64,000 nucleotides of DNA from Blastocladiella emersonii ATCC 22665 (lineage: Eukaryota; Fungi; Blastocladiomycota): positions 1,240,001 to 1,304,000 of the forward strand of contig JANHCV010000011.1 in the NCBI GenBank assembly GCA_025594325.1. Reading direction: 5' to 3'. Below the pieces are notes generated by a model. It had not been told where the DNA came from and did no database searches. It worked only from the letters and a program-made list of their open reading frames with translations. Position numbers and translations under genes: made by a program. Below are positions 1 to 22,006 of this stretch, in pieces; the stretch's first letter is position 1; every line of letters begins with the position of its first letter.

Positions 1-3000
1 GGTCCTTGGTCTTCTCGGGCTTTGGCAACCCGAGGCGAGGCGGATGGATGGTGGGCCGACTGCAACGCGAACGACGACGGACAGCTTGAGTTGAGCGTGG
101 CCGACCGAGGCGGAACGCGGCGAGCGGCGGCGACGGCGACACGATGCGATGCGGAAGGACGAGCGGGCGTGTGCTGGTGGTTGCAGTCGAACCTGGCCGC
201 CGAGGCCGAGACCGAGACGAGCCGTTGTGCCCGCCATGATCTCGTTGACGGCACTCGCGCACGCTTAATCTTCTTGAAGGCAAAGGCCGCCGCCGAGCGA
301 CTCGACGATGCGGTACGACAGCATGACCTTGTTGGGTACACGCGCGCTGCGGTACCTTGGTGGATCAAGCTACGCGAAAGTGAGTGTGAGTTTCTTTTAA
401 TAGCGACGACAGAAAGGGCGGGACGCGGTACCTTGAACGGGCCGCGAAGCACTGCCATGGCCTCGGCCTGACTTGGGTGCTGCATGACGTGAAGCTGTCG
501 GCAGCCCGAGCAAGTGAACAGGTCGCTGAGCGCGCGCGTGGTCTTGAACTCGACGAGGATGCACGCACGCGCGGATGACAATGTCGAAGAAGATGATCTA
601 CACGCGCGGCAGGCGAGGGTCTCGAGGTGAGCCACGCGGTGGGGACCAGTCAAGAGTCGCGGGCATCGGTGCCGCGCCGTACCTGCTGCTGCTGATACTT
701 GTGAGGACCTGCGCTTGGGCTTGAACACACGGGTGCACCAGTGCAGAGCGGGCGATGCATTCCCAAAAGCTGCACAAGCGTTGATGTGGTGGGCGACCAC
801 CGCCGCCGGACGCTGCGAGGGGTCAATGGGCCGTTGCACAGTCACGTACTCTTTGCGCCGCCACTCGATTCGCCGCCCTTCGTTAGCCCCCTCCGCACGG
901 CCGAGCTCCCTTTTGCCTGACCGCGCCACACAGCGGGCCCGCTGCACCATGCGTTCGCAGCGAACGAGCGCATGGTGGGGGAGGTGTGGGCGGTGCTTAC
1001 GGCGGGGGTGCAGGAGCTCGTTTCCCCCGCAGCAAAGAAGGGGCGTGCCGAGGGAGAGGTGCTAGGGCCGGGCGTGTACGCCGGCTCTGCACCAGGACGT
1101 CTATCTACACGCAGGCGAGCGAGCGAGCGAGCGAAGGGGGCGGTCGCGGCCACGGCCACGGCGGGCGACCGCGTTACTGCGCCGTCGTGAGGCGTACCGG
1201 CCACCACGAGCGGACGATCGACGCCGTGGCCACGGTGGACGCCGCGACGACGGCCTTGATGCCGATGGTCAATGAGGAGGAGAATGACGGCGACCGTCAG
1301 CTGACGCGGGTCAAGTCGTCGAGTGCCGCCAATCCGTCTACAGTCAGGCGCGCGCAAGTGAGTGGGCGGAGTGAGTGGGCGGTCGGTGGCTTCTGAATGT
1401 CCGCGCTATGAGCGTACCCTCGTTGATACCGCCGTCACCGATGAGGTAGACCCGCCGGACTCGAACTTGAACAGCGCGCGCGTTGGGATCATGAATGCCG
1501 GCGCTCGTCGGCGCGACATGACGCGGCCCCAGCGAGCGAGCGACGCACGATCTTGGCCTGCTGCAGCTGCAGCTGCAGGTACTGGACTAGGAGAACTACT
1601 CGAACCGCGCTGCGAGCCCGAGTAGTGTCTACACAAGCACAAGCGCAAGGGTGAGTTGTTGGGCTGCGACGCCGGAAGTTCCGATTGTAGTATGTTATCT
1701 TGGTGTGCCGCGATGACATCTGAATTCCGAGTAATCGACGCGGCGCGCGCGCACGTCGTGCACCTGGCATTGTTCAGCCGCGCCGTCGCCGCGTGCTCAC
1801 CACGACCATCGAGCTCTGCGCCGCGACCACACACATGGCACGCGCGAGGGACGCTACGGAATATAGTGCGGGTTCCACCACGTGCCGGACTAAGAAGTGT
1901 TTGAGCCGGGGCTCCCCCAAGCAGTGCGTACTGGGCGTCGTCCCTCGGCGTGTCATGCGAATGGCCGCGGCGCCGCGCGACCCGACGCGGCGAGCGAGCG
2001 GCAGCTGCTGCTGCTGCGACGTGTACCACCCATGGAGAACCGCCGCCCGAGACGTGCGTGACGGACTGACTTCACCGCGTCGCGTAGACGTGGTCCTCGC
2101 CCCTTCTACAACCTCGCCATGCAGGCGCTCTCGGTGCGCCCGCTCAAGGGCATCGCCGCCATCTCGGCCCAACCACGAGGACCGCTCGACGCACTCGTTT
2201 TCTGCGCAGCGACCCTGGTGCACACGATTTGGGCGGCCCGCTGTGGCTCATGGCGCAAGGCCTGCTGACCGAGTCCGTCGTCCAGGACGAGCCTATTCCG
2301 CTGCGGGTCATCGGGTTCATCCCGTTCCCGCACCCGCTTCCGCTCACGGGCTCGGCCAGGTCCAGGTCTAGGTCCTCGCCCGCGAGCGCGACGGCGTCTA
2401 TGCGCTCGCATGCCCCGCCTACCCGGCCAAGGTGAACTCGCTGCTCCTGCTGCTGCGAGGCAAAAAGCCGGCAGCGGTGAGTCTCGCGTCTTCAATGCTG
2501 CCCGCCAAGGAGACGCGTGCCGTCCTCACGCAGGTCGCGTTTCTTCATGCTCGACGCGTGCCAGTGGGACGACGCACTCGCGCCGCTCAAGGAGGTCCAC
2601 CTCGGGCCGAAGTACCTGATGCACATGGCCGACCCAGACCATCCGCGGTACGGGCACGAGAACAAGGAGATGGGCATGTTCCTCGCCGAGGCCAAGACGG
2701 TCGAGTCGTGTGGGGCTATCGGTACGGTTTCTTTCGCCCATCGATCTCAGAGCGGATTCTCACGCACGTCCGCTCACTCTAGTCAACCTCGCCATGCACA
2801 AGCTTTGCGGCGGCAAGCTCTCCTTGCTTGACCCGGCCTCCGTCGCGGCGCATCGCGTCGCTCCGTGCTTCGCTGGACACCTGCGTCGACCGCCGGTTCC
2901 TGCTCACGTACCTCGACGCGTGGCGGTCCACGTCCGACGCCGTGAACCCGGCCGTCGAGGTCGTCCGGCTGCACCTGCTGCTGAAGCTGGACCGCGGCGT

Positions 3001-4448
3001 GCGGGGGTTGGTGGCGCAGAGTCGACTCGTGTGCGACCACTTGCAGCCCATTGACGATCTCGACCGGCTCGTTGACGACCTCGCCGCGCGCGGTCACGCG
3101 TTTGCCAAGTCGCTCGTCGCGCAGCGCGCCAGCGACGTGCGCCGCGTACTCGACCTGTGGCAGTCGCTCGTTGACTCGACGCCGCCTTCAACCGCAGCGC
3201 CAGGTAGCGAGCCACACTGGGTCTCGGTCCCCGACATTGCGCAGCTGCTCGCCGACCTCGATTACGCCGCCAGCCATGTGTCCGACATCCAGTGGCTCCT
3301 CGCGCGCGACCGCGCTCTCGCGTCGCACGTCCTGCGCACCTGGATCCCGACGACTGATGAGGCGCGGCTCGCGGAGCTCGGCCACGCCTAGCTCGTTGCG
3401 TACCTCGAGGACTCGAACGGGCCGCGCGAAGTGCTCGTCCGCGCGTACCTCGCCGAGGGCTGGAGCATCGCCAACTGGCTCAATAAGTACCGCGCGGCCA
3501 GTGTCCCGTCTCAAGCCGCGGTCCCCGACTTTCTCGCTGCGCAGCGGCCTGCATCCGAGGTGCGCGGACAGCTGGTCGCCGTCCACGGCGTGCGTGCGCC
3601 GGCTCGTAACATAAGTCGGCGACTTTTGCGTCCGCGCAGCGGGTGTGCGAAACCGAGGAGGTGCCGTTCGAGGTCGTGGTTGACGCGTTCCTCAAGATGG
3701 ACGGGCGGTACGGGTTGTTCCTGGCGCCGCGTCCGACTGATCGCTCACTGTTAACCGGGTTGTAGCGGCACACACTCGAGCTTCTTCGTGTCGTTTGGTC
3801 GCTGTCAGGAACGTGGACATGGTCGACTTTCGCGAGCTCGCCAACGTGCTGCCCGGTGACTGGGCGCTCGAGGGCGCGGCGCCGCTGCTCATGTACGAGA
3901 TCGCGCAGCTCGCGCGCCGGCACCGTTGGAGCACCATGGTCGTCAAGTCGCTCGAGTGCCAGCCAACATGACGGTACGCGGCTCTCACTCGACCTCACAC
4001 TCAGATACGTCGCTAACACCGTGTCACGCGTCAGACCAAGCTCGCCATGCTCGCCGCAGCGCAGCAGCAGCCATCTGCGCCGCGTGCGGGCGCGCCATCG
4101 ACCACACAGACGGACGCGTTTGTCGTGACGCACCACGGTCCTTAGGTCTTCCACGCACCGTGCGCGCCGCGGACCGTCAAGTCTAGCCAAACTTTGCGTT
4201 GAATAGATCACGCTCTTCTCTCATCCTGCGCACGATCCATGGAAGCGGTTTCCGCTCAGCGGGGCCGAGCGATCGATGGGCTCGATTCAACTCAGTCCGT
4301 GCGATGCTTCTTGATAGTTTCAACGATGGCCGGACACAGGACAGGTGGGTCAAGCTCGGCCGGAGAAAGCGGTCAGTGCGTCCGTTGCGTGCACATGTGC
4401 GGGCGCGAATGTGAAAATGTCTCGCACGTCACGCGACCGCGGGACGCG
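1..4448 (+). repeat. Left arm of giant inverted repeat (open-ended at the window start)
   Basis: Position x is the reverse complement of position 9061-x. Every ORF in the track has an identical mirror (e.g. 2828..3391+ / 5670..6233-). 1-10 ggtccttggt pairs with 9051-9060 accaaggacc. The arm ends at ...gaccgcgggacgcg (4448). Confidence 0.97.
2090..3990 (+). pseudogene. Decayed spliced gene of unknown family inside the left arm
   Basis: Protein-like segments (FFMLDACQWDDALAPLKEVHLGPKYL...; LDTCVDRRFLLTYLDAW...ELGHA*LVAYLEDSNG; VPFEVVVDAFLKMDG; VDFRELANVLPGDWALEG) lie in shifting frames. There is a canonical intron at 2722-2782 (gtacgg...gctcac...ctag), an in-frame TAG at 3389-3391 and frameshifts. 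Boundaries are approximate; more relic ORF lies upstream. Confidence 0.55.
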
Positions 4449-4612
4449 AGTTGCGTCGAGTGCACGGATCCAGCATCCCCCGCGTCCCGGCGTGCAAGCC
4501 GAGCGGTGCCTGATACAGGCAACGTGCGAGACGTTGCCAAGACTTGCTGGGTTTTCGTTTTCCGCGCCAGTCGGCTGAAGCAAAAGAAAGAGGAGCACGC
4601 GACGCGCCGGAA
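4449..4612. other. 164-bp unique spacer of the palindrome, containing short hairpins
   Basis: Arm complementarity stops at 4448/4613. The spacer holds tgcctg-ata-caggca (4507-4521), ggcaacgt-gcgag-acgttgcc (4518-4538) and caag-a-cttg (4538-4546). Confidence 0.9.
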
Positions 4613-7600
4613 CGCGTCCCGCGGTCGCGTGACGTGCGAGACATTTTCACATTCGCGCCCGCACATGTGCACGCAACGGACGCACTGACCGCTTTCTCCG
4701 GCCGAGCTTGACCCACCTGTCCTGTGTCCGGCCATCGTTGAAACTATCAAGAAGCATCGCACGGACTGAGTTGAATCGAGCCCATCGATCGCTCGGCCCC
4801 GCTGAGCGGAAACCGCTTCCATGGATCGTGCGCAGGATGAGAGAAGAGCGTGATCTATTCAACGCAAAGTTTGGCTAGACTTGACGGTCCGCGGCGCGCA
4901 CGGTGCGTGGAAGACCTAAGGACCGTGGTGCGTCACGACAAACGCGTCCGTCTGTGTGGTCGATGGCGCGCCCGCACGCGGCGCAGATGGCTGCTGCTGC
5001 GCTGCGGCGAGCATGGCGAGCTTGGTCTGACGCGTGACACGGTGTTAGCGACGTATCTGAGTGTGAGGTCGAGTGAGAGCCGCGTACCGTCATGTTGGCT
5101 GGCACTCGAGCGACTTGACGACCATGGTGCTCCAACGGTGCCGGCGCGCGAGCTGCGCGATCTCGTACATGAGCAGCGGCGCCGCGCCCTCGAGCGCCCA
5201 GTCACCGGGCAGCACGTTGGCGAGCTCGCGAAAGTCGACCATGTCCACGTTCCTGACAGCGACCAAACGACACGAAGAAGCTCGAGTGTGTGCCGCTACA
5301 ACCCGGTTAACAGTGAGCGATCAGTCGGACGCGGCGCCAGGAACAACCCGTACCGCCCGTCCATCTTGAGGAACGCGTCAACCACGACCTCGAACGGCAC
5401 CTCCTCGGTTTCGCACACCCGCTGCGCGGACGCAAAAGTCGCCGACTTATGTTACGAGCCGGCGCACGCACGCCGTGGACGGCGACCAGCTGTCCGCGCA
5501 CCTCGGATGCAGGCCGCTGCGCAGCGAGAAAGTCGGGGACCGCGGCTTGAGACGGGACACTGGCCGCGCGGTACTTATTGAGCCAGTTGGCGATGCTCCA
5601 GCCCTCGGCGAGGTACGCGCGGACGAGCACTTCGCGCGGCCCGTTCGAGTCCTCGAGGTACGCAACGAGCTAGGCGTGGCCGAGCTCCGCGAGCCGCGCC
5701 TCATCAGTCGTCGGGATCCAGGTGCGCAGGACGTGCGACGCGAGAGCGCGGTCGCGCGCGAGGAGCCACTGGATGTCGGACACATGGCTGGCGGCGTAAT
5801 CGAGGTCGGCGAGCAGCTGCGCAATGTCGGGGACCGAGACCCAGTGTGGCTCGCTACCTGGCGCTGCGGTTGAAGGCGGCGTCGAGTCAACGAGCGACTG
5901 CCACAGGTCGAGTACGCGGCGCACGTCGCTGGCGCGCTGCGCGACGAGCGACTTGGCAAACGCGTGACCGCGCGCGGCGAGGTCGTCAACGAGCCGGTCG
6001 AGATCGTCAATGGGCTGCAAGTGGTCGCACACGAGTCGACTCTGCGCCACCAACCCCCGCACGCCGCGGTCCAGCTTCAGCAGCAGGTGCAGCCGGACGA
6101 CCTCGACGGCCGGGTTCACGGCGTCGGACGTGGACCGCCACGCGTCGAGGTACGTGAGCAGGAACCGGCGGTCGACGCAGGTGTCCAGCGAAGCACGGAG
6201 CGACGCGATGCGCCGCGACGGAGGCCGGGTCAAGCAAGGAGAGCTTGCCGCCGCAAAGCTTGTGCATGGCGAGGTTGACTAGAGTGAGCGGACGTGCGTG
6301 AGAATCCGCTCTGAGATCGATGGGCGAAAGAAACCGTACCGATAGCCCCACACGACTCGACCGTCTTGGCCTCGGCGAGGAACATGCCCATCTCCTTGTT
6401 CTCGTGCCCGTACCGCGGATGGTCTGGGTCGGCCATGTGCATCAGGTACTTCGGCCCGAGGTGGACCTCCTTGAGCGGCGCGAGTGCGTCGTCCCACTGG
6501 CACGCGTCGAGCATGAAGAAACGCGACCTGCGTGAGGACGGCACGCGTCTCCTTGGCGGGCAGCATTGAAGACGCGAGACTCACCGCTGCCGGCTTTTTG
6601 CCTCGCAGCAGCAGGAGCAGCGAGTTCACCTTGGCCGGGTAGGCGGGGCATGCGAGCGCATAGACGCCGTCGCGCTCGCGGGCGAGGACCTAGACCTGGA
6701 CCTGGCCGAGCCCGTGAGCGGAAGCGGGTGCGGGAACGGGATGAACCCGATGACCCGCAGCGGAATAGGCTCGTCCTGGACGACGGACTCGGTCAGCAGG
6801 CCTTGCGCCATGAGCCACAGCGGGCCGCCCAAATCGTGTGCACCAGGGTCGCTGCGCAGAAAACGAGTGCGTCGAGCGGTCCTCGTGGTTGGGCCGAGAT
6901 GGCGGCGATGCCCTTGAGCGGGCGCACCGAGAGCGCCTGCATGGCGAGGTTGTAGAAGGGGCGAGGACCACGTCTACGCGACGCGGTGAAGTCAGTCCGT
7001 CACGCACGTCTCGGGCGGCGGTTCTCCATGGGTGGTACACGTCGCAGCAGCAGCAGCTGCCGCTCGCTCGCCGCGTCGGGTCGCGCGGCGCCGCGGCCAT
7101 TCGCATGACACGCCGAGGGACGACGCCCAGTACGCACTGCTTGGGGGAGCCCCGGCTCAAACACTTCTTAGTCCGGCACGTGGTGGAACCCGCACTATAT
7201 TCCGTAGCGTCCCTCGCGCGTGCCATGTGTGTGGTCGCGGCGCAGAGCTCGATGGTCGTGGTGAGCACGCGGCGACGGCGCGGCTGAACAATGCCAGGTG
7301 CACGACGTGCGCGCGCGCCGCGTCGATTACTCGGAATTCAGATGTCATCGCGGCACACCAAGATAACATACTACAATCGGAACTTCCGGCGTCGCAGCCC
7401 AACAACTCACCCTTGCGCTTGTGCTTGTGTAGACACTACTCGGGCTCGCAGCGCGGTTCGAGTAGTTCTCCTAGTCCAGTACCTGCAGCTGCAGCTGCAG
7501 CAGGCCAAGATCGTGCGTCGCTCGCTCGCTGGGGCCGCGTCATGTCGCGCCGACGAGCGCCGGCATTCATGATCCCAACGCGCGCGCTGTTCAAGTTCGA

Positions 7601-9060
7601 GTCCGGCGGGTCTACCTCATCGGTGACGGCGGTATCAACGAGGGTACGCTCATAGCGCGGACATTCAGAAGCCACCGACCGCCCACTCACTCCGCCCACT
7701 CACTTGCGCGCGCCTGACTGTAGACGGATTGGCGGCACTCGACGACTTGACCCGCGTCAGCTGACGGTCGCCGTCATTCTCCTCCTCATTGACCATCGGC
7801 ATCAAGGCCGTCGTCGCGGCGTCCACCGTGGCCACGGCGTCGATCGTCCGCTCGTGGTGGCCGGTACGCCTCACGACGGCGCAGTAACGCGGTCGCCCGC
7901 CGTGGCCGTGGCCGCGACCGCCCCCTTCGCTCGCTCGCTCGCTCGCCTGCGTGTAGATAGACGTCCTGGTGCAGAGCCGGCGTACACGCCCGGCCCTAGC
8001 ACCTCTCCCTCGGCACGCCCCTTCTTTGCTGCGGGGGAAACGAGCTCCTGCACCCCCGCCGTAAGCACCGCCCACACCTCCCCCACCATGCGCTCGTTCG
8101 CTGCGAACGCATGGTGCAGCGGGCCCGCTGTGTGGCGCGGTCAGGCAAAAGGGAGCTCGGCCGTGCGGAGGGGGCTAACGAAGGGCGGCGAATCGAGTGG
8201 CGGCGCAAAGAGTACGTGACTGTGCAACGGCCCATTGACCCCTCGCAGCGTCCGGCGGCGGTGGTCGCCCACCACATCAACGCTTGTGCAGCTTTTGGGA
8301 ATGCATCGCCCGCTCTGCACTGGTGCACCCGTGTGTTCAAGCCCAAGCGCAGGTCCTCACAAGTATCAGCAGCAGCAGGTACGGCGCGGCACCGATGCCC
8401 GCGACTCTTGACTGGTCCCCACCGCGTGGCTCACCTCGAGACCCTCGCCTGCCGCGCGTGTAGATCATCTTCTTCGACATTGTCATCCGCGCGTGCGTGC
8501 ATCCTCGTCGAGTTCAAGACCACGCGCGCGCTCAGCGACCTGTTCACTTGCTCGGGCTGCCGACAGCTTCACGTCATGCAGCACCCAAGTCAGGCCGAGG
8601 CCATGGCAGTGCTTCGCGGCCCGTTCAAGGTACCGCGTCCCGCCCTTTCTGTCGTCGCTATTAAAAGAAACTCACACTCACTTTCGCGTAGCTTGATCCA
8701 CCAAGGTACCGCAGCGCGCGTGTACCCAACAAGGTCATGCTGTCGTACCGCATCGTCGAGTCGCTCGGCGGCGGCCTTTGCCTTCAAGAAGATTAAGCGT
8801 GCGCGAGTGCCGTCAACGAGATCATGGCGGGCACAACGGCTCGTCTCGGTCTCGGCCTCGGCGGCCAGGTTCGACTGCAACCACCAGCACACGCCCGCTC
8901 GTCCTTCCGCATCGCATCGTGTCGCCGTCGCCGCCGCTCGCCGCGTTCCGCCTCGGTCGGCCACGCTCAACTCAAGCTGTCCGTCGTCGTTCGCGTTGCA
9001 GTCGGCCCACCATCCATCCGCCTCGCCTCGGGTTGCCAAAGCCCGAGAAGACCAAGGACC
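4613..9060 (-). repeat. Right arm of giant inverted repeat
   Basis: Starts cgcgtcccgcggtcgcgtgacgtgcgag (4613), the reverse complement of the left-arm end. The mirror continues to 9060, which pairs with position 1. Confidence 0.97.
5071..6971 (-). pseudogene. Mirror copy of the decayed gene in the right arm
   Basis: Identical reverse complement of 2090-3990, including the same stop and frameshifts. Confidence 0.55.
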
Positions 9061-9159
9061 AGCCGGCGCACGACGGGTACCGGCGGTCGCGAGTATGGGA
9101 AGCGTGTTGAACGACGAAAACATTCACCGCGGTCCATCTGTGACCCTCGTTACTTTGTT

Positions 9160-9372
9160 CTTGAACCACATGTCGAACGAGTGGTAGTCGGCGGCGTACC
9201 GTACCCGAGGTCAGCGAGCAGTTGCACAATGAATGTCACGGCGGAACGGGATCCAGCGCGGCTCGCTGCCCGGCGATGCGATGGCAGGCGGCGTCGAGTC
9301 GACGAGCGACTGCCAGAGGTCGGGCACGCAGCGCACGTCGCGGGCGCGCTGCGCGACGAGCGACTCGACAAA
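9160..9372 (-). pseudogene. Diverged fragment of the palindrome-borne gene
   Basis: gcaggcggcgtcgagtcgacgagcgactgccagaggtcgggcacgcagcgcacgtcgcgggcgcgctgcgcgacgagcgact aligns by eye with about 5790-5960 in the same orientation, with many substitutions. Confidence 0.75.
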
Positions 9373-10250
9373 AATGCACAAGTGGACTACAAACTCCGAA
9401 AAAGTGCGACCCCGTAGACTTGATTGAGTGCGGCTGGCTCACGATTACGGACGAACTCGCGCCATCGACCATCACCGCCGGTTTGAGCCGCTCCGATACC
9501 CTGAAGCACTGAAGCACAAACCTGTTGACATTCCCGGGCCGCACGCCAAGTTCTGGCGTATCAACCGGATCCGGTTCGAACGACCGCGCGTGGCTTGGAC
9601 GCAGAATGGGCATTTGGATACGCGATGCGCCACACACGTGATGGGTCACCATGCGCTTCCGCGTGCCATTTCGGGATCGCCAGAATATTTACGTCGCCGC
9701 ACCAACGACCCGGCAGTTGAACCTGGACCGTCTTTGTCAGCCAGGATATTCATATCAGCCCCGGAGAGTCGCAGACGCAGGTGGCCGAGGCTTTTCGTTC
9801 GGCTCCGAGCCCCTGGATGTGGCGCGTGGCTCAGCAGGGCCTGGCCGGATCAGCGGTCCGATCACAGCCCCATGAGGCGGCGCCGCCAAAAAAAGGATCC
9901 TGAGACTTTGATCCGGGCTTCGACTGTTTTCGCAGCATGCGCTCACGGATGCGCCTGGGGCTGGCGCCACGAGAACACAAGCAACGCGACGGCGTATCTG
10001 GTGCTCCCGATGGCACGGATGCTGGTGCCCAGCTCGCCGTACGCGCGGATCCGGAACAATCGACGCGGGCTGCCGTGGCGCTAGAGGGCAATGAGTGGGT
10101 CCGCATGCCCATGAAACGGTGTCGCGTATCAGGCCCGGCATCACGCGTCGTGCTGCGCATGTCATGCGCGTGCAAACGTTTTTGGCCGCGTCCGTTACTG
10201 GACTCGGTACAGAGCACGTCGTCGCTGAAGCGTTTTGTAGGCCGAGGACA

Positions 10251-10317
10251 ATAAAGAGGCCGCGCCGCCCGCCTTCAATCCTGGCAAGCATGTCACATCC
10301 TTAGAGAGCTGGCCTCG
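10251..10317 (+). promoter_or_regulatory. Candidate core promoter shared by the DUF7029-like paralogs
   Basis: ATAAAG at 10251 and TAGAGAGCTGGCCTCG at 10302-10317. The same 16-mer (62325-62340, minus) and ATAAAAG (62391-62397, minus) precede the paralog. Confidence 0.5.
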
Positions 10318-10437
10318 TCCATCCACAGCATCTAGATCGTCCGCCCGGAGCCCACCTGAGTCTTTCAACCCTCCTCGAACCTCCTACACTCCACCACCGC
10401 CTACATCTCTCGCACGCGCTGCTAGACCGTAGAAACC

Positions 10438-12431
10438 ATGGTCGCCGCCACCACGAACCTCTCGCTCGCCCTCGTGGCCACGGCGACCCTCGCCCTCCTC
10501 GCCGCATCGGCCGCCGATCCTGTGCTCGCCACCTCGGCCGCCAATGCCCGCGAGATCCCTCTCCCGATCCCCGAGGCCGAGTACATTCGCAAGCCCGCCA
10601 ACCCCGCCGACGACAAGTTTGTCCTCCGCGCCCACGAGGTACGCTTATTCTCGAGCAACTACACCTGTAACACTACGAGACGCTGAACCAACGCACGCAC
10701 GCACAATCGCGATCGTAGAATGGCGAGTTCATGGGCAGCGCGCTCGGCGCGACCAAGGCCAAGCAGGCCATGAACATGATGCACCCGATGCCCGTCAAGC
10801 GCAACAGCTTCGCGCCCGTCATGACCGTCAAGGCCATGTACGGCGCCGAGGTGCCGTCGCGCGAGAACGTGTTCGGCAAGCCGGCCATGATGGTCGCGAG
10901 CTGCGACCTCAACACCAAGATGGCGTCCGTCAACCTCGACAACTTCCCGCAGATCACCAAGGTCGAGTGCTCGGCCGAGTCGGTGACGCTCACCTTCGAC
11001 GACGCGGCGACGGCCGCGGCCGCCAGCGCCGAGTGGGCCAAGACGCAGGGCAAGTGGGCCGTGATCGTCGGCGGCGAGTGGAAGTGCGACGGCGCCGAGG
11101 AGATTGCCACGCGCGAGGTCACGGCCGCGCCCAAGGCCGCCGCTGACGGCACCGGCAAGGTCGTCCTGGCCACCAAGAAGATGGCCGTCGAGGACGTGGT
11201 CGCCGATTTCTCGCTCAAGGTCGCGCAGCACGACATGCCGTCGTCGTCGGGCGCGAACCTCGCCCGCCGCGACCTCTCCAACTCGGTCAGCTGGGACCTC
11301 GCCGTCAACTGGGACAAGAAGAAGCGCAAGCCGCTGAAGCCGTTCATCTCGCTGCTCAACACGTCCGTGGCCGAGCTCGGCGCCGACATCTCGCTGCACG
11401 GCCGCGCGACGTTCAGCCTCGAGGCCACGGGCAGCATCACGTCGCTCAAGACGTACCGCGTTGCGCTGTCGGGCGACATTGGCGCCAACCTCGACCTGTT
11501 CCTGCGCGCGCACAAGGAGCACAAGGCCGACCTGTTCTCGGTCGAGGTGTTCGTCCTGCCGCTGACCCCGTTCTACATTCCCGGCATTTTCTCCATGTCG
11601 CCCGAGCTGCGCCTCAAGGCGGCCGCCACGTACGAGCTGGCGGCGTCGCTCAAGCTGTCGGCGGGCCTCGAGCTCAGCTACCCGTTCGTGTGGAGCGTCG
11701 AGTCCAAGACGGGCCTGTTCGGCAAGCCGATCGCCAAGGCCGAGGGCGACATGCGCCTCCGCCCGCACCCGCCGACGCTCTCGGGCCAGGTCAGCGCGGG
11801 CATCGCGGCGCACGTCATCCCCGCGTTCGGCGTGGGTCTCCGGTTCTGGCGCATCCCGATCTTTGACCTGGCGCTCGAGCTCGATAACTCGATCGGTATG
11901 ACCATGTCGGCGGGCGGCAAGGCCGGTCTGGGGAACGACGGCAAGCCGGGCGCGTCGGGCGGCATCAACGTCGAGGTCGCGCACGAGCACTCGCTCGACT
12001 TCCGCATCCGCTCGGTCATCGCCAACAAGGCCTTCAACATCTGGTCCTCGGGCAAGCAGCCGCTGCCCGCGCTCAGCTTCAAGCTCGGCGGCGACCCTAA
12101 CCAGCGCATCGACGGCTCCCCGATCGCCCAGCCAACGGCCACGTCGACGGCGGGAGCCCCGCCTCGCTCGACGCCCATCAAGCCGGTGACGCGCGTCAAC
12201 CGCAAACACCCCCTCTTCAACGGCGGCAAGTCCAAGCCCACGTCCGGCGCCCCGTCCACGGCCCCGTCCACGGCCACGGCCACCGCAGCGAAGCCCGCTC
12301 CGACCCCGAAGCGCGGCTACCGCGATTTCGTCGAGCCCGGCAAAAGGTCGAGCACGCGTGCGGACCGTGGGACTGCCCGCCCGAGCCCAAGTCCGACTCG
12401 CCGCCCGAAGCGTGGCGACGCGAACGTTTGA
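10438..12431 (+). CDS. Secreted beta-rich protein, DUF7029/DUF7223-like, with Pro/Thr-rich tail (exons 10438-10638, 10719-12431)
   Basis: Hydrophobic signal peptide; 80-nt GT-AG intron restores the frame; strong GC3 bias. VNLDNFPQITKVECSAESVTLTFDD...W and LTPFYIPGIFSMSPELRL resemble fungal DUF7029 and DUF7223 as I recall them. Kex2-like LARR|D site. Confidence 0.75.
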
Positions 12432-13249
12432 GCGTGGCCGCCGACATCAGTCGGGCCTTTGCTGCTGTTGATTCTGATAGTTTGAATAATAAAATGTGTC
12501 TACTTGATCAGCCTCCCCTTCAGTCGAGACAAACCAGTTGAATGAGTGTGCTCAAAGGCGAACTCCGAGTGGCACATCGATCAATCATCAAGCGAGCGAT
12601 GGACACGGCAATTGGGTCATCGGCCGCCTCCTCTCATTCGAGTCGCAGACGGCACCGCTAATGCTTGAAAGTGGCGATGGCGTTGCGCGCAAAGCCTTGA
12701 ACTCGACCTTACACAACGTCGTCGCGGGCGAGTCCTAAGCACAAGTATGGCGTCGCAGCATTCGGACAGCGGGCGTAATGATCGAGCTGCTAAGCTCAGC
12801 AAACGCCTGTCAGCAAGCTTTGCACACGGTGCGAACCGTACAAGTACTTTACGCACCGCCCGACCGAAAGCGCGTGGTTACTGCTCACGTGAGTGGCGCG
12901 GCGCGTAAAGTCTGGCGGCGCGGTCCCGTCTCGAGCGAGTGGAACTCGAGGTGCAGGGCCGTCGTAAGAGTGTATCATCTCAAGACAAGGCTCGAACATT
13001 GACTATTTCAATCTAATTGTGCGTGAACCACAATATAAGCATCAGTCGCATGAGGGACACGTGTGCCGTGGCGGGTGGGTTCCCACGCTGCCGCGGCGCG
13101 CCAGCTTGCCCGGTCGCGCCACGCCATCGCGACGAGTTCGATGCGACTCTGTGTAAATACCCACCAGCACTGCCTCGTTGCTTCCTGGTCGCTCCGCACG
13201 GTCACGCAGCCCGGTTCCTGGTCATGCGGGCCCGACGGGCTTTCCACGT

Positions 13250-14950
13250 TCGAGCCTCCCACATTCAATGTCCGGGAGTTGTTTCTGCGCCTTGATTTTA
13301 GCTCCATGTCCTGGGCTGATCAAATTGCACTCCTCGGTGCCCTCGTGGACTCGGTCTTTGCCCCACAGCTCTCGCTACGCCGTGTTCCATCAACTGCCCT
13401 CCATCATTACCGACTGTTGTCCGCTCCTGCTTCAAGTCGAGCGACCCGGTCCGAGCTCCAGGTCCTCGACTGGCTCGTGGCCAACGGCTGGACCAACACC
13501 GCGGCCGCACGCAAGGGCCCGCTTGCAGCCCGGATCGTTTACTGCGGCCCGGCTGCCTTTGCCCTCCGTGCTTGCCCGCCACAAGCACATCGTTCTCGAG
13601 GGCGTGACGCCGGCCTACCCGCACCACTTTGGCTCGCGCGGTGGCCACGACCGCGTCATCATGTGGTTTTGGATTCCGCCCTTTGTCTCTCCCGCCCAGC
13701 TCGCGGTGATTCTCGAGCCGGGCCTGCTTGATGATACCTTCGCTTGGAGATGGGACCGTGCCATTGCATTCGCCTCGCAGAATTTTCCCCCGAGTGTTTG
13801 GGTCCGGTCCGCGCGCACCTTGGCGAGGAAAAGTGGCTGCAATCGATTGAAAAAAAGGTACGCGCGTTGCCCCGCCGCTAGTGTACGATTGCTCGGGCCA
13901 AGGTTGATGTCCTGTTGTTGTTGTTATGTAGAGGTTTCCTTGTGTGATCGACAACCCGTGCTTCGTCGGGTGCAGCAGCAGCGACAAGGACGAGCTCCCA
14001 GTGCCTTTTTCCGGCGACTCACGCACAGGCACTCCTCCGCTTCACTCGCGAGTCGAGCCTCGGCGATTTCTCTGGCATCTTTGCCGAGGCCATCCTCAAG
14101 TGCGCCTACAAGTACCAGGACTCTGCCGCCAAGGCGCTCACGCGTTTTCTCGGCTGCAACGTGGTCGCGGACCCAGTCGATCTCGTTGCGATCGCAAGCA
14201 GAGTGTTCCAGCGCCTTGGCGGAACAACCAAGTTCCTGGACTCTTGACTGTGCCCGGCACCTGGTTTTGCTTGGCACGGTCGCTTTTGGCGGCTCAACGA
14301 GTACGAGTACGAGCGCCGCCGCCCGCGCGCTTGACATTGTGGCCGAGACGGGCACCGCGTCGTGCTGGCTCGAGGAGATGCTCTGGGCAACCGCGTGCCT
14401 GCCCGAGTCAACGACCTGTGGCGGTGTTGCGCCGGCCCTTGCGCAGGGCGCCGATTGCTGCCCATGTTCTTGCACCACCCCGCTCAGCGCGACGTGCTCG
14501 CTTCCCTGCTCAAACGCTTCCCGTCAGCGGTGCGTGGCGTCGGAATCAAGCGTGCGCTGATTGTTCCGCGCACAATGGCCCTCGACCGCCGCACGCTTGT
14601 TTCCGACTTGGTTCGCGCTCTCGCCAGGAGTCTCAAACTACTTGCTGCACCCTTAATGAGACGAGCGACAGCCGCGGGCCAGCGCGGTACCTGTTCGAGT
14701 CGTTTGCTTGCGCGGATCCACAGTGGGTGCGCGACTTTTTCTTGAGGCACACGCACCCATTCCGCCGCAAATCTTTGACGTCTTGGCCAACGCGACGCCG
14801 CTTGACGAGGTTGAGCTCGCCCAGCTCGCAGACCTGGCCGGTGTTGTTGACGACGACAATCCGCCGCCAAAGCAGTCGCACCTCGCTCGTGCCTGGGGTT
14901 ACCTATCCCAAGTTGTTGGCAGTTTGATCCCGCGTGCCGCCGCGCCCTAA
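13250..14950 (+). pseudogene. Frameshifted gene relic(s), possibly ankyrin-like
   Basis: Protein-like pieces in alternating frames (LQVLDWLVANGW; VIMWFWIPPFVSPAQLAVILEPGLLDD; VLASLLKRFPSAV...; ARLFLEAHAPIPPQIFDVL...*) with weak codon bias. The family is a guess. Confidence 0.35.
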
Positions 14951-15254
14951 CATGATACACTAAACCTTTGCTTTTCGCCCGTCGCGCACACCTTTGATAT
15001 ATCAGGGATATGCTGCGCGTGAGGTGGCGACACCCCGAACGGGATATCCATCCATCATTCTCGAACGCGTTCAGTGGTTCTTTTCCCGTCGTCGCTCTAA
15101 GAGCCGTCGTTGACCTTGTTCGAAATGGTCGAGGGAACCCATGCGGGTTGCGTCACTTCAATGTTCATCGGCGCTGGACGAGCAAAGTGTCCCCTCCGCT
15201 CTCGCCGATGATGGGTTTGATGCGGACGGCGGCCGCCACCATGACTACGAGGTT

Positions 15255-15456
15255 GATGGACGCGCCGAGATATCACGTGCGCGTGTCTCACGCGTGCGGC
15301 AGTGTCTCGCACTCTTGCAACCACGCGCCGTCCCCCTCAAAAGCGTTGCGACGCGATGGAAAACAGCCCCGCACTGAGTCGAGTGAGCTAGAACACGTAG
15401 GACCCCGGACCCACAAAGTCCCGCCGCCTGCGATGGACGGAGCGCTTAGCTTTTGT
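15255..15456 (+). repeat. 202-bp dispersed repeat, copy 1
   Basis: Aligns without length change to 60179-60380. The last ~100 bp differ at one position. GATGGACG occurs at the start and near the end. Confidence 0.9.
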
Positions 15457-15669
15457 TTCGGAACGACCTTATTTTGCCACCGACCCGTGTTGGGTGAATC
15501 TTTCTTGGCTAGGTTCTTCGCGAGGTCGGGATTCGAGACTCGCCGCGTCGCCATTTCGGGCGCTGAAGTCGAGCCCGCCCAGTTCATCATTTTTTTTGCG
15601 CAGTCAACTACTCGATGAAAACACACGGTACCCACGGCACCATGTGCTGAGAGCGCTGGATCAGCGAAG

Positions 15670-16109
15670 CGAGCCACTAGTGCGTTCGAAGTGCCCCTCA
15701 CATGACCGCGTTGCGCCACTTCTCCTCTCTCGCCCGCTCAAATCAAGGGATGGCCCTCACTTTCCCGAGAGCCAGTAAAACGTCGAGGTGAAGGAAGTAG
15801 AAGGGGGGTGTATACAGGATCAAACTTCACACTCGGACTCGCGCGGCGCGCGCACACCGGACCCGCGCGTCGCGTCACTCGACGCGGCCGCGGCCGCGGC
15901 CACCACGACCTTACGCCGACGTGGCGGGCTTGGCGAGGTACTTCTCGATGTCGCCGGCAATATCCTCGGGATTGGTGAGCGACGTGTAGCGGTTGACGAC
16001 GTTGCCGTCGCGGTCGACCAGGAACTTCTCTACACAGACCAGGCGAAGTCGCGGGTGTTAGCCGAAGTCGCGGAGCGTGTCGAGTGTGCCGAACATGCCG
16101 AAATTCCAC
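15670..16109 (-). pseudogene. Truncated duplicate of the GPX 3' end (WNF, intron 16030-16098, last exon 15911-16029, 3' flank)
   Basis: Direct repeat of about 18610-19040. The last exon reads EKFLVDRDGNVVNRYTSLTNPEDIAGDIEKYLAKPATSA*. Homology stops at 16109-16110. Confidence 0.85.
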
Positions 16110-16360
16110 TGTTCACCATGTGATTGACGCGGAAACATGTCCACCGCACAATGACACCCAAACCCTTGGCTTCCCGACCACCGCAGCCTGCGGTGTTTGG
16201 GGCTGCAGCAGCCGCTGAAAGCTGCCAACTCGACCTTTGCACCGCAGCCCCGCTTCTCTCTCTTTCCTTGATCTGACCCATTTTGCAACGTATCAACAAC
16301 ACGCAACCAAAGCTTAGTCCCAGCGCCGCCAGCTTCATCGATCTCTCGCACACGCCAGCC

Positions 16361-17794
16361 ATGAGCTTCAACGTCGGTGGCCAGAACGCCACGCCCGTGC
16401 GACCCGGCAACCCTCTTGTTCCTATGCAAACGCCCAACATCGGTCCAGCCGGTCCGGCTGCGTCGGGCACTGCCGCCGGCGTGGGTAGCGGGAACGCCTC
16501 TGGCGCCAGACAGACTTCAGCGGAGGCTGGCGTTTTGACTTTGGGTCCCAACAGCGCGGTCAGCTCATGTCCGCTGGTCTTTCAGAATTTGGTCATTTCC
16601 AGCACCACCCGCGAGATTCCCATTGTCGATCTCGTCACCAAGCACGGTCTGTGCAAAAATGGCAAGCCCGTTTCGGCCGACGCACCCGTCTCGGACAAGC
16701 ACTGCGGACTTATGGCCAATCTCGAGCAGCAGCTCGCTCAATTCTCGCTCAAAGGATGCATCACGCTCTCCGAGGGCTCGTCCACTGGCACGCCACTCAA
16801 GTTACTTTGCTCAAACGACTTTGGCGTCCCCGCCGACCCGAACGGTTTTCCTGTTCCGCGCGACCTTCTTTCAGCGGGAGGTGCGATCCGACTTGACGTA
16901 CCCGCTGCTGGTTCCAACCCGTCTGCACTTATGAAATTCGTCCCGACCGGTACCACGTCCGCCGAATGTGCACCAATTTGCGCCAAGAATGCACTCGGCG
17001 GTGCTGCGCTGACGATGCAGGACCTTCCTACAATCGGCGCACAGGACAAACCCGAGGGTGCCACAGCCTTTCTTCATGGTTGTCTTGTCTACAGCAAGAA
17101 CAACTCCGAGGCGTGCAGCTGGCTCAACTTGGCCCCGCTGTTATCTCGCAATGGAACCGTTTCCCGCCTTGGCGTTATGAGCTTTGTCCACTGCGGCAAC
17201 GCGACGTCCGACATTTACAAAGCCTCCAGCGCTCTTTCCATGCTTTCACTGACCCCACCAACGGCAACGAACAACGGCAGCGGACCTAACGACGTAACGA
17301 CTGACCCTTCCGATTCAACCTCAACCGGCCAACTTGGCGGGCTCGCTATCGTTGGGATTGCTGCAGGAGCAGTCGTTGCACTTGTGCTTGGGGTACGCTC
17401 TCAGTTCCATCGTGTTCGGTTACGAGTTGTTTCCGTTGCTCACCCTACAACTGTGTAGGTTGTCTTCGTTGTCGTCTACCGTCGCCGCAAGGCAAACCAA
17501 CGGTTTGCAACGCTCAGCAAGCACAATTCGGACGTGTCTCCTCGGGCATCTGAACCATCGGCGGCAGCAATCACAATCGAGCGCGCGGACGAGCAGCTGC
17601 GCCTGTCACGAGCGCCGTTCCCTACGGCCCACTCGACGGAGTCGACGCTTTACCTTCCAGGTGCCCCGCTGGCCGATACGGATGCGCTTCTTATTCTGCC
17701 TGGACCGGAAACACCTACAACGCCTACGACGCCTCGGCGGGCGCCTGTGCTCCAGGGCGTCGTCACGCGCGAGGCCGCGGAGAACCGCACCTAG
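16361..17794 (+). CDS. Single-pass membrane protein with Cys-containing ectodomain (exons 16361?-17392, 17459-17794; true start uncertain)
   Basis: Splicing the 66-nt gtacgc...tgtgtag intron completes a TM helix GGLAIVGIAAGAVVALVLG|VVFVVVY followed by RRRK. No signal peptide is seen from 16361. Confidence 0.6.
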
Positions 17795-18841
17795 GACGCG
17801 ATTTGGTCGATATAGAAGAGTTCTTTGTGTTCATCATGAGATGGCCGGTGATTTGATACCTCAGAGAGGCTTGGATCAGCTTGAGCGGGAGACCACGAGC
17901 CGCAGCTCGGCAGCGTGAGACGCGCCGATCAAACACGTGATGTGCGAGACACGCGGCTGGCCGAGCCGCGGCGCGCGTGTCGCTTTAGGCACCGAGTAAG
18001 GTCTTAGCAGGGGTGTTGGTCTTACGCTCACGCAATGCTGTTCCTATGAAGGCCTTGATGCGCAAGGATATACGAGCTTTCCCGTTTCGCCCGCTGCATG
18101 CTCACTCGCGTGACGAAAGCCTCTTTCGCAACCATATCGGTTGATGGGCTTTCTCGCACTTCCTGGTTTGAGAGCACTGGTTTGATCAGCACATCAGCGC
18201 GCCCTGGCCAAACGTCCCCCTCGATCCTCATGTTGCCTGGGCGCAACGCGAGATTTAAGGCACAGCCGGTTGGTGCGTGTACAGCAATGGCATAGATTCA
18301 CGTCGATGCAGACGATTGGATGATGAGGGCGATTGCAACCATCCTCCTTCTCCCGCTTGATTGTCCACCTTCTGCACGATAGACTCCCGGTCTCGAACAG
18401 CAGTGGAGGATGTGTTCTCAATCAACTTTGGACTCTGCTAGCATGCGCACCGTGTTGTGTAACAACTGGTTGCACGAGAACCCGCGGACCAGTCGGCGGC
18501 GATCCTTGGACTTTTTTGATGACGATTTAGACGTTGGCCCTGATGGCCCTGATGCGGCTTCACGGTCTTGCTCGGCCTGCTCGACTTACGCGACAGTTGC
18601 TGATTAGCGAGTCATGAACGCGTTCGAGGTGCCCCTCACATGACCGTGTTGCGCCACTTCTCCCTTCGCTCGCTTAAAAAAAGCGTTTGTCTCCTCTTTC
18701 TCGAGCGCGAGCAATACCTCGAGGTGGGAGAAGTAGAAGGGGGATGTATACAGGATCAAACGTCACACTCGGACTCGCGCGGGGCGCGCGATCACTAACT
18801 CGCGCGTCGCGTCACTCGACTCGGCCGCGGCCACCACGACC

Positions 18842-19636
18842 TTACGCCGACGTGGCGGGCTTGGCGAGGTACTTCTCGATGTCGCCGGCAATGTCCTCGG
18901 GCTTGGTGAGCGACGTGTAGCGGTTGACGACGTTGCCGTCGCGGTCGACCAGGAACTTCTCTACACAGACCAGGCGAAGTCGCGGGCGTTAGCCGAAGTC
19001 GCGGAGCGTGTCGAGTGTGCCGAACATGCCAAAGTTCCACTTCACCGATTTCAAAAACATGCTACTCTTCTGCGACTTGAGGTACTTGTAGACGGGGTGC
19101 TCGTTCTCGCCGTTGACGTCGACCTTGGCCATGACGGGGAAGCTGACGCCGTAGTTGAGGCGGCACGTGGTGACGATCTCCTCCTCGGTGCCGGGCTCCT
19201 GGCCGCCGAACTGGTTGCACGGGAACCCGATCACCTGCAGGCCTTGGTCCTTGTACTTCTTGTTGAGGGCCTCGAGGCCGTCGTACTGCGGGGTGAAGCC
19301 GCACTTGGAGGCCACGTTGACGATCAGGACCACCTTGCCCTGGAAGTCGGAGAACTTGACCTCGTTCTTGCGCGCGTCGAGCGCCGTCAGGGCGTAGAAG
19401 GGGGACGTGGTCATGGTGGCTGACGAGGTCGCGGCGGGCACGGGCGGGTCGGTTAGCGCACGCGGCTTGGTGGCGGTGGGGGAGGTAGTGGTGGTGGTAG
19501 CGGGGTGGCGGATGGGGTAGACGACGCGCGGGGCCGAGTTGGGGGAGGGGAAGAGGTGGGCCGAGAGCAGCGCGACGAGCACGCCGACGGCGACGTGGCG
19601 CCAGTCGAGCTTCTCGAGGAGCGTGGAGGCGGGCAT
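18842..19636 (-). CDS. GPX: Glutathione peroxidase family protein, Cys-type (thioredoxin-dependent GPX-like); exons 19636-19030, 18960-18842
   Basis: Motifs GKVVLIVNVASKCGFTPQY, GFPCNQFGGQEPG and KWNF|EKFLVDRDG. A 69-nt GC-AG intron. Hydrophobic N-terminal extension, with a second in-frame ATG at 19414. Confidence 0.93.
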
Positions 19637-20242
19637 GAAGTTGCTGCAAGTCGGTGCCGCGCGTCGTCGAGGATCGAGAGTGAGGGAGAGGAGGGGAGGG
19701 AGGTCAGGCCGCGCAGGTCGAGTTGGGGGCAGCCGGTGCGGGTGCTCGCTCACCTTGTGGTTGTTGTTGGTTCGTAGGGATCCGTTGCATACAACTGTAT
19801 CGTTGGGTTGCGGGGAGAGAGAGGGAGGGGGGCGCGTACCGAGGGCCCTCTTATGGTGGTGGAGCGAGTGGGCGGCGGCGCGGAGCATGGTGGCGAGGGC
19901 GGTCGGCCGGTCGGGTCGGGGTCGGATGCGGATGAGCTCAGCTGCTTGCGGGCGCCGGAAGCTGCTCGGTCACTGAAAAGTCAATCCTTCGGTCCGAACG
20001 ACGCGAGGGGAGGGACCGACGTCATTATGTACGTGGCGGTGGCGGGCAGCGAACCGGGGCGAAGCTTCGCGGCTCAACGCGCGTGGTGTGGTCGGTCAGC
20101 GCGGCGGTTCGATGCCGATCCCGCCCGCCGAGCTCACGCGTTGGTCGGTGTCTCACGCACACGTGGGAAAAACAAAGTGTCTCACGGCTCATCAACGCGT
20201 CTCACACAGCCTAGCTATACATTTCCACCCCACTCTGAGCTC

Positions 20243-22006
20243 TCACGCCCACTGCCGCTCGACGCCGGCCTCCGCATACTCTGCCGCGTGCATGACGCGC
20301 GCCTCGTCACCCACGACGCCGCTCCACTCGCGGTCGTGGAGCTTTCCCGCCCAGTTCTCGCCCGAGCTCGACGGCCACGTATTGAGCAGCAGGTGCGTCC
20401 CGCGCTCGGGCACCTTGACGCGCGGGGCACCAGGAAGCACCGCCGCCGGCGCGCCGTGGTCGGCGACGGCGAACACGGGCCGGCCGTCGACGCGCCAGAC
20501 GACCGCGTGCCTTGTCCACCCGACCGCGTACGAGTGCAGCGCCTCGGTCGCGTCCCACCCGCACCGCACGCGGCGAGGCAGCCCGCCGCCCGCCTGCACC
20601 GCGTTGTCCTCGAACAGGTTCAGCTGCACCGTCCGCGGCAGGTTGCCCGTCACCTCGACGATGTCGATCTCCTGCACCGGGTCCGCCGACCGGTACGTGA
20701 ACGCGGCCGAGACGACGCCCGACGCGCGAGCCGCGCGGAGCGTCGCGTGCAGCCACACCACCTCGTTGCGCGCGCCGGCGGTGGCAGTTGCGGGCGCAGG
20801 GGCCTGCGAGTCGTGCGCGTGCGAGCGCGCGTGGTGATGCGGGAGGTGCACGCCGATCTTGCCGAGGAGCGAGGTGATGGACCCGCGCTTCTCCTTCTTG
20901 CCCGCCGCGTGCTGCTGCCCTTGGCCGCCCGCCGCCGCTCCGCCGACGACCTGCGGCGGCGCAATCTCGACAGCGCTGCGCACCTCGGCCGCGAAATACG
21001 GCTTATCCTTATGCGCCCTGGCACCCGCGCTCGCGCACCGCGTGACCTCGATCACGAGCCGCCCGCCGCCCATCGCCGCATCGTGCACCGCGACCGCGTT
21101 GTCGGGCCGGAACTGCGCGAGGTTGGCCGCGAACGAGTGCGTGCTGCGGTCCCACGCGTGGCCCGGGAACGTGCCGCCGTGATCGTGCGTGCGGCTGCCG
21201 CACGGCGCGCGCGGCGTGGCGGTTGTGGGGGAGAGGCCGAGCAGGGCGAGCGACCGCGCGTCCATTTCCTCGGACCACGCGCACCGAGCGTTGGGGGATG
21301 ACGTCCACACCGAAAAGTCGGCCAGGCCGTGGCACTCGCCGCGGTCCTGCCACTCGTCCACGTCCGGCAGGACCATGAGCGCGCGGCCGGGCGTCCCCGA
21401 AACGGTAGGCGCGGTCCACACGGGCGACGCGAACTTGGCGAGCCGCGTGACGCCGAGCGCGGCCGCGGGGTCCGCGAACTCGAGCCACACGTCGGCGCGG
21501 ACGCACACGAGCGACTCGGCCGGCTCCATGTCGTTGCGCATGAACCCCTCGGCAGGAGGCGGGCGCACGAGGAACTGGCCGACCCAGACCGGGTTCGCGC
21601 CAGATACCGCCGTCCCCCACGCGTACGCGCGGCCGTCCTCGAGCAGCGTGCGTCCGCCGACGACTGCGCGCACGCTCGCGGCGGGCTGTGTGGCGGCCCA
21701 TGCACGCGGCGCGAGGCGCAGCGCCAGGAAACCGTAGCCGAGGTCGCGCGGGACCGACGCGTGCATCCACTCGTTGGTCGCGACGGGCGACTGCGCGTAC
21801 CCCGCCGCCCACTCGGTCTGGATCACGGTCGCACCGTCGGATGGCGGGCCCACCGTGTAGCTGCCCGGAACGGTAGCAGCGGTGGAGCCGGCGGGCGCGA
21901 CGGGGAGCGCGCGCGAGCTGTCGGCCGAGCGCAGGTCGAACTGCGCGCCGACGATGACCATGTCGGCGCTGTGCATGGGATGTTGAAGGTTCATGGTGCC
22001 TAGCAT
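20243..22006 (-). CDS. Protein with C-terminal glycoside hydrolase family 16 domain and unknown N-terminal region
   Basis: QEIDIVE catalytic motif, SGVVSAAFTY, HSYAVGWTRHAVVWRVDG, LLLNTW...WAG. A TATAAAA-like box about 55 nt upstream of ATG 22006 supports this start. Confidence 0.75.
   Translation of the reverse strand: MLGTMNLQHPMHSADMVIVGAQFDLRSADSSRALPVAPAGSTAATVPGSYTVGPPSDGATVIQTEWAAGYAQSPVATNEWMHASVPRDLGYGFLALRLAPRAWAATQPAASVRAVVGGRTLLEDGRAYAWGTAVSGANPVWVGQFLVRPPPAEGFMRNDMEPAESLVCVRADVWLEFADPAAALGVTRLAKFASPVWTAPTVSGTPGRALMVLPDVDEWQDRGECHGLADFSVWTSSPNARCAWSEEMDARSLALLGLSPTTATPRAPCGSRTHDHGGTFPGHAWDRSTHSFAANLAQFRPDNAVAVHDAAMGGGRLVIEVTRCASAGARAHKDKPYFAAEVRSAVEIAPPQVVGGAAAGGQGQQHAAGKKEKRGSITSLLGKIGVHLPHHHARSHAHDSQAPAPATATAGARNEVVWLHATLRAARASGVVSAAFTYRSADPVQEIDIVEVTGNLPRTVQLNLFEDNAVQAGGGLPRRVRCGWDATEALHSYAVGWTRHAVVWRVDGRPVFAVADHGAPAAVLPGAPRVKVPERGTHLLLNTWPSSSGENWAGKLHDREWSGVVGDEARVMHAAEYAEAGVERQWA

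Follow-up and report, generated by a model that had tools for sequence, protein, structure and literature searches.

How do the two arms of a long palindrome come to agree to the last letter in the interior of an ordinary contig, and is their identity a property of the chromosome at all? This question is raised by a locus on contig JANHCV010000011.1 of the fungus Blastocladiella emersonii ATCC 22665 (Blastocladiomycota; assembly GCA_025594325.1), situated at the beginning of a stretch of 64,000 nucleotides (positions 1,240,001 to 1,304,000 of the forward strand) that is called the window here. Position numbers without an accession are those of the window, negative numbers denoting sequence upstream of it; base 1 of the window corresponds letter for letter to JANHCV010000011.1:1240001 and lies inside the palindrome. 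A first-pass annotation, made from the letters of the window alone, had described a palindrome of at least 9 kb and had considered a very recent fold-back, conversion between the arms, or an artefact as its cause. The analysis reported here indicates that the locus is probably a real interstitial chromosomal palindrome, namely, an old inverted duplication whose core was recently homogenised from arm to arm.

Extent of the palindrome and identity of its arms

Within the window alone, a repeat search identified two arms at 1-4448 and 4613-9060 that are 100% complementary and separated by 164 nt, in agreement with the arms of at least 4,448 bp without mismatch and the 164-bp spacer described in the first-pass annotation. 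The left arm is seemingly cut at base 1 because the window opens within the repeat. When the upstream sequence was included, as that annotation had proposed, in a self-comparison of 35.8 kb around the locus (record positions 1226630-1262431), the left arm was found to reach -8913. Each arm comprises 13,362 bp, with 0 mismatches between them, and the palindrome with its 164-bp spacer has a total length of 26,888 bp, three times the minimum first proposed. It occupies JANHCV010000011.1:1231087-1257974, in the middle of a contig of 1,500,809 bp. The full left arm extends from -8913 to 4448 (JANHCV010000011.1:1231087-1244448), its inner 4,448 bp (1-4448) lying in the window, and is followed by the spacer (4449-4612) and the right arm (4613-17974). 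A wider inverted repeat, -8928 to 4448 paired with 4613 to 17989, contains 3 mismatches and no gaps; all three mismatches fall within the outermost 15 bp, so that the perfect arms end at -8913 and 17974. Identity over 13,362 bp cannot be the product of chance.

The sequences that flank the palindrome are unique and differ from each other. On the left, a Robl_LC7 gene and two others are located, and on the right, GPX, GH16, and RFC genes. As two different unique sequences adjoin the outer ends of the arms, two real copies are required.

Diverged margins outside the perfect arms

Beyond the perfect arms, the sequence from -9214 to -8914 can be aligned to the reverse complement of 17975-18333 over about 300 bp, with ~70-76% identity and with indels. 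The local score of this alignment was 115, whereas none of 50 shuffled sequences scored above 34, and blastn recovered a core of 119 bp with 76% identity (E = 3e-19) but no further copy of the margin sequence in the DNA compared. Since these margins have diverged while the core is perfect, the repeat must be much older than its core, which was therefore re-copied recently. The arms are more alike than the age of the duplication predicts (100% in the core versus 70-76% in the margins), this age being taken from the margins and from a paralogue, not from an orthologue.

A paralogous palindrome on another contig

The paralogue, here named J, is a second palindrome at JANHCV010000010.1:1463851-1500687. 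It matches the window sequence with 95% identity and has 11.8-kb arms and an 8.4-kb spacer, which holds one copy of a gene, G, that is present as a relic in each arm at the window locus; this copy is annotated as the 534-aa model H9P43_007953. The alignment of the two J arms contains 47 differing columns, 46 of which fall within either the first 6 bp or the outermost ~330 bp, leaving a single one in the ~11.4-kb interior. Where the J arms agree with each other, 205 of 4,940 sites (4.1%) differ between J and the window locus, but 0 differ between the arms of the window locus. Identity within loci combined with divergence between them is, as judged from these alignments, the pattern of concerted evolution. 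Because J and the window locus have diverged while each is alike internally, each locus must have been homogenised independently.

The divergence between the two loci is not uniform along the arms. Identity is 83-91% over window positions 4443-9100 and rises to ~98% over 9100-13044 (J 23500-27446), non-coding DNA included, which suggests a more recent ectopic exchange between the loci that covered the segment with the DUF7029 gene described below. The outer arm parts of the two loci are unrelated. Two further relatives of the arm segment, JANHCV010000003.1:333757-356014 and JANHCV010000009.1:1417752-1438158 (contigs 3 and 9), are single and non-palindromic, and both contain a decayed G. Taken together, the sequences point to a complex history of these loci. 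A short repeat at 7056-7285 was considered as a guide to the ancestral arm and dropped, the element being multi-copy in J.

Anatomy of the centre

The spacer is asymmetric. Only 22 of 82 mirrored positions match, and the score of the spacer was equalled or exceeded by 105 of 500 shuffles; with mirror symmetry absent, the idea that the spacer is an eroded palindrome centre was rejected. In J, the spacer and the adjoining right arm have a collinear counterpart at 15230-15690 with ~90% identity. The homology to J begins 6 nt to the left of the spacer, with the sequence GACGCG (4443-4448, plus strand) at the window locus and GAAGCG in J. The right arm starts with CGCGTC (4613-4618), the inverted complement of GACGCG, and this pair represents a candidate fold-back microhomology. 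At the one junction available, the boundary homology amounts to the full 6 nt at the window locus and to 3 exact nt (5/6) in J.

Fold-back duplications are characterised by a spacer and inverted microhomology, which measures 2-8 bp at human junctions, and 4-6 bp suffices in yeast (PMC3907307). The centre of the Blastocladiella palindrome has this anatomy of a fold-back junction, i.e., a loop with a candidate short inverted homology at its boundary. The sequence of J left of the spacer homologue shows, over 428 bp, no match at the window locus, and for this reason either a short-spacer or a long-spacer centre may be ancestral. The relatives on contigs 3 and 9 were also tried for polarising the centre, but their homology ends before the spacer region.

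Origin of the palindrome

The anatomy of the centre raises the possibility that a single very recent fold-back or template switch made the whole second arm de novo, without an earlier repeat or continuing conversion. The 0 differences over 13,362 bp, which include clearly unconstrained DNA, would be explained in this way, as would the asymmetric spacer with its candidate short inverted microhomology, and the single G copy at the centre of J is also in line with such an event. However, about 300 bp of degenerate inverted homology outside both ends are unexpected for a fresh copy, and J likewise shows a perfect core with eroded ends. Furthermore, folding back of a broken end yields a dicentric or terminal product and not an interstitial palindrome between unique flanks. 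Neither a terminal deletion, nor a new telomere, nor a dicentric product was found beside the duplication, which has unique, gene-bearing flanks on both sides. We therefore regard an origin of the entire arm in one recent event as unlikely.

In the explanation that we favour, homogenisation of an older repeat, an inverted duplication would have arisen at the locus long ago. Later, the sequence of one arm would have replaced that of the other through intrachromosomal recombination, either by gene conversion or in one long break-induced copying event. In this way 13,362 bp would have become identical, whereas the outermost ~300 bp, lying beyond the conversion tracts, would have drifted to ~70-76% identity. 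The lesions in G, described below, would either predate the duplication or have spread to both arms through the same copying. As the product of a simple fold-back is terminal or dicentric, a second step is needed for an interstitial palindrome, and recombination with a pre-existing outer inverted repeat could have provided it. Of the three readings in the first-pass annotation, arm-to-arm homogenisation thus holds up best, with the qualification, drawn from the margins and from J, that it acted on an older repeat; the fold-back and the artefact are less favoured.

An assembly artefact, arising from chimeric fold-back reads or from a graph mis-join of one copy or of two dispersed copies, was considered as well. 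The assembly consists of 21 contigs and was made from unamplified PacBio HiFi reads with a mean length of 10.5 kb, using LJA, then purge_dups, and then Pilon (PMC9730499). Some features of the locus would suit an artefact: the arms are identical and exceed the average HiFi read in length, the library was a low-input one, and the palindrome is known from the assembly alone. In addition, an exact look-up of two open reading frames (ORFs) that span the spacer found neither on record, so that no other assembly was matched. Against this stand the diverged margins, which are true two-copy sequence, and the arms of J, which differ at their ends in a manner incompatible with a chimeric read. At ~185x coverage, a true alternative path leading on from the inner ends of the arms would moreover be expected to break the contig. 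The first-pass annotation had named a window that begins at the end of a contig, in a library made by multiple displacement amplification, as grounds for abandoning the palindrome; in fact, the palindrome is situated at about 1.23-1.26 Mb of a contig of 1.50 Mb, a different unique flank joins each outer arm end, and the library was unamplified. An artefact appears very unlikely on these grounds.

Several observations weigh against homogenisation of an older repeat. The palindrome is known from assembled sequence, and with arms of 13.4 kb and a mean read of 10.5 kb, only a small number of reads can connect the spacer with either unique flank. Conversion is inferred from the pattern, and a single long and recent copying event would match this pattern too. 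As J is a paralogue and not an orthologue, concerted evolution and independent formation of two palindromes are incompletely separated by the comparison, and the outer arm parts differ between the two loci. The microhomology is reduced to 3 exact nt (5/6) in J, and a 5/6 match arises by chance in about 1 of 100 tries. Finally, either centre, the one with the short or the one with the long spacer, could be ancestral.

Decay of the gene carried by both arms

The inner part of each arm contains a relic of gene G. The left copy is located at 1961-4186 on the plus strand and the right copy, its mirror image, at 4875-7100 on the minus strand. The two copies converge tail to tail, with reading frames that end at 4186 and 4875, 688 bp apart, and the palindrome centre lies ~260 bp downstream of each. 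Two lesions were identified in conserved sequence, given here for the left copy. The first is a frameshift between the ORFs 2710-3054 and 2828-3391, which parts "...DPASVA" from "SLRASLD..."; in the paralogue both are contiguous. The second is an in-frame stop codon at 3389-3391 (GHA*LVAYLE, compared to GHAVLVAYLE in the paralogue), located where a protein of Catenaria has an aligned conserved block. Frameshift and stop are the same in both arms. The ORFs and the comparison with the paralogue and Catenaria thus confirm the tail-to-tail relic with shared lesions that had been recognised from the window alone. The G copy of the paralogue carries other lesions, two compensating frameshifts around "DIQWL...".

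In the public annotation, the left copy is represented by H9P43_008436 (443 aa, 1961-3971) and the right copy by H9P43_008437 (400 aa, 5090-7029), models that skirt both lesions by means of invented introns. Judged by these lesions, both models represent fragments of a pseudogene.

When the 187-aa ORF 2828-3391 served as query in a full HMMER scan, the G homologues found were Blastocladiomycota proteins only. The matches in B. emersonii were short models of 400 aa (right arm), 534 aa (paralogous locus), 468 aa (contig 3), and 97 aa (contig 9). Full-length relatives with 34-40% identity are CNH-domain proteins of 1000-1100 aa from Catenaria, Allomyces, and B. britannica; the G model of the paralogue corresponds to residues 405-965 of the protein from Catenaria. 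By language-model features, the full-length relatives resemble Vps3/Vps39 (CNH, Vps39_1, zf-Vps39_C), and a search of solved structures with a full-length relative gave no match. G is a decayed CNH-family paralogue and, as a lead only, may be one of the Vps3/Vps39 type. A short and older fragment of the G family is located at 9170-9372 on the minus strand, close to the 9160-9372 reported in the first pass, and shows 85% nucleotide and 76% amino acid identity. It lies in the right arm and is hence present twice (mirror copy at -311 to -109), and a longer version of it is kept on contig 9. With a full-length member absent among the matches, B. emersonii appears to keep the G family as fragments only.

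The arrangement of the relics, tail to tail with reading frames ending 688 bp apart, would be suited to a hairpin-RNA locus, in which convergent read-through yields double-stranded RNA and small interfering RNAs (siRNAs) directed against the G family. However, the other G copies found in the genome are decayed or short models with 77-87% DNA identity and do not provide an obvious target, and the full-length relatives, which all belong to other species, are too distant for siRNA targeting at 34-40% protein identity. Such a role is very unlikely. More generally, the palindrome probably has no dedicated function.

The live gene and the remaining arm sequence

A 566-aa ORF at 10731-12431 carries the Pfam domains DUF7029 and DUF7223. 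It belongs to gene H9P43_008438 (10438-12431, plus strand), which encodes a protein of 637 aa; an identical twin, H9P43_008435, is present in the left arm (-3370 to -1377, minus strand). An exact database look-up of the 566-aa ORF returned no record; the real gene contains an intron. In a homologue search, the ORF matched best, with 99% identity, a protein of B. emersonii ATCC 22665, and the 90% cluster of this protein includes a second member that JANHCV010000011.1 encodes twice. Its first exon begins with a hydrophobic, signal-peptide-like N-terminus, and the product is, as far as can be predicted from this sequence, probably secreted. The GC content at third codon positions (GC3) is 0.94-1.00 in the DUF7029 gene, ~0.9 in GPX and GH16, and ~0.85 in relic G, and codon periodicity, assessed by codon-position GC, is absent from 12.4 to 18 kb. 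Because codon-position GC parts live from dead sequence, each arm can be said to contain one live gene. The first-pass annotation had seen nothing constrained at the protein level; this holds true for 1-9060 but not for the full arm, with its DUF7029/DUF7223 gene.

The outer 5.5 kb of the right arm (12432-17974) are free of annotated genes and lack codon periodicity but include a duplicate of the GPX 3′ end. Ten arm ORFs examined with Pfam gave nothing exceeding noise, and scans of the window with Rfam and for tRNAs gave no matches. The window has ~65% GC, and its long ORFs are no more than scattered, in keeping with a eukaryote. The long inverted ends, identical to each other, and the presence of related segments at four or more loci might suggest a mobile element bounded by giant terminal inverted repeats. 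Such an element has next to no probability, as the scanned ORFs show no Pfam match to a transposase, integrase, or polymerase family, the unit is nearly all repeat with a middle of only 164 bp, its ends fade into diverged homology instead of being sharp, and the related loci hold different subsets of the segment, two of them non-palindromic.

Some additional observations were made on neighbouring genes. GPX, which encodes glutathione peroxidase, is located just beyond the right arm; its 3′ end (18620-19046) recurs within the arm at 15682-16117 with 89% identity, the left-arm copy being located at -7056 to -6621. In the public annotation, a single model of 814 aa (18842-22006, minus strand) covers the glutathione peroxidase as well as a GH16 glycoside hydrolase. 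Codon periodicity in this region reveals two coding blocks separated by a gap, one at 18.86-19.5 kb and the other at 20.2-21.9 kb, and from this profile the model is probably a merged one. A further DUF7029/DUF7223 gene is present at 60624-62297 (minus strand) and has ~78% DNA identity to the arm gene; this family has several members on contig JANHCV010000011.1 (H9P43_008451, H9P43_008467).

Significance of the locus

A full-text literature search found no description of palindromes in B. emersonii, and the word is absent from the genome paper. Large, near-identical palindromes are a known kind of structure; the particular value of this one lies in its 164-bp spacer, its eroded margins, and the availability of a paralogous outgroup. 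The palindromes of mammalian sex chromosomes are the best-known examples, and conversion from arm to arm is regarded there as a safeguard for genes that are unable to recombine.

For B. emersonii, the palindrome means two always-identical copies of a live gene for a predicted secreted protein, and a centre that is prone to rearrangement, possibly including inversion of the spacer. In mapping-based analyses of the genome, two-copy ambiguity is to be expected at the palindrome. It is conceivable, though rather doubtful, that B. emersonii runs an efficient genome-wide re-copying from arm to arm, which would yield dozens of letter-perfect palindromes on ordinary chromosomes. If so, spacers as short as 164 bp would be tolerated, although palindromes built in this way should be fragile in yeast and mammals, and the handling of hairpin or cruciform DNA would have to be atypical; the window locus and J would then constitute a natural system for studying the limits of conversion tracts and the instability of palindrome centres outside sex chromosomes.

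Comparison with known palindromes and fold-back duplications

Fold-back duplications, such as human inverted duplications with deletion, the palindromic amplifications of yeast, and the rDNA palindrome of Tetrahymena, share with the Blastocladiella palindrome an asymmetric single-copy spacer and, as a candidate feature here, short inverted microhomology. In contrast to this palindrome, which is interstitial with both flanks kept, they are terminal or dicentric and accompanied by a deletion or a new telomere.

The resemblance to the palindromes of sex chromosomes (P1-P8 of the human Y chromosome, 26 palindromes of the human X chromosome, and those of other primates and the mouse) extends to more features. 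On the human X chromosome, arms of 8-140 kb, identities of up to 99.99%, and spacers ranging in size between 77 bp and 358 kb have been described, and in primate X palindromes rearrangements are concentrated at the centre (PMC8327919). Similarly, the Blastocladiella palindrome has arms of more than 8 kb with an identity of at least 99.9%, a single-copy spacer in the known size range, and a protein-coding gene in each arm. Its internal identity is far above the identity to the related palindrome, and the differences between the related palindromes cluster at the centre of symmetry. Unlike the sex-chromosome palindromes, it occurs in an early-diverging fungus, on an ordinary chromosome-scale contig without known sex linkage. 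Its arms are 100% alike, compared to 99.9-99.99%, and consist mostly of non-coding or dead DNA, and conversion was deduced here by comparison with a paralogue instead of an orthologue. These likenesses and differences suggest that arm-to-arm homogenisation is general to long inverted repeats and not a speciality of sex chromosomes.

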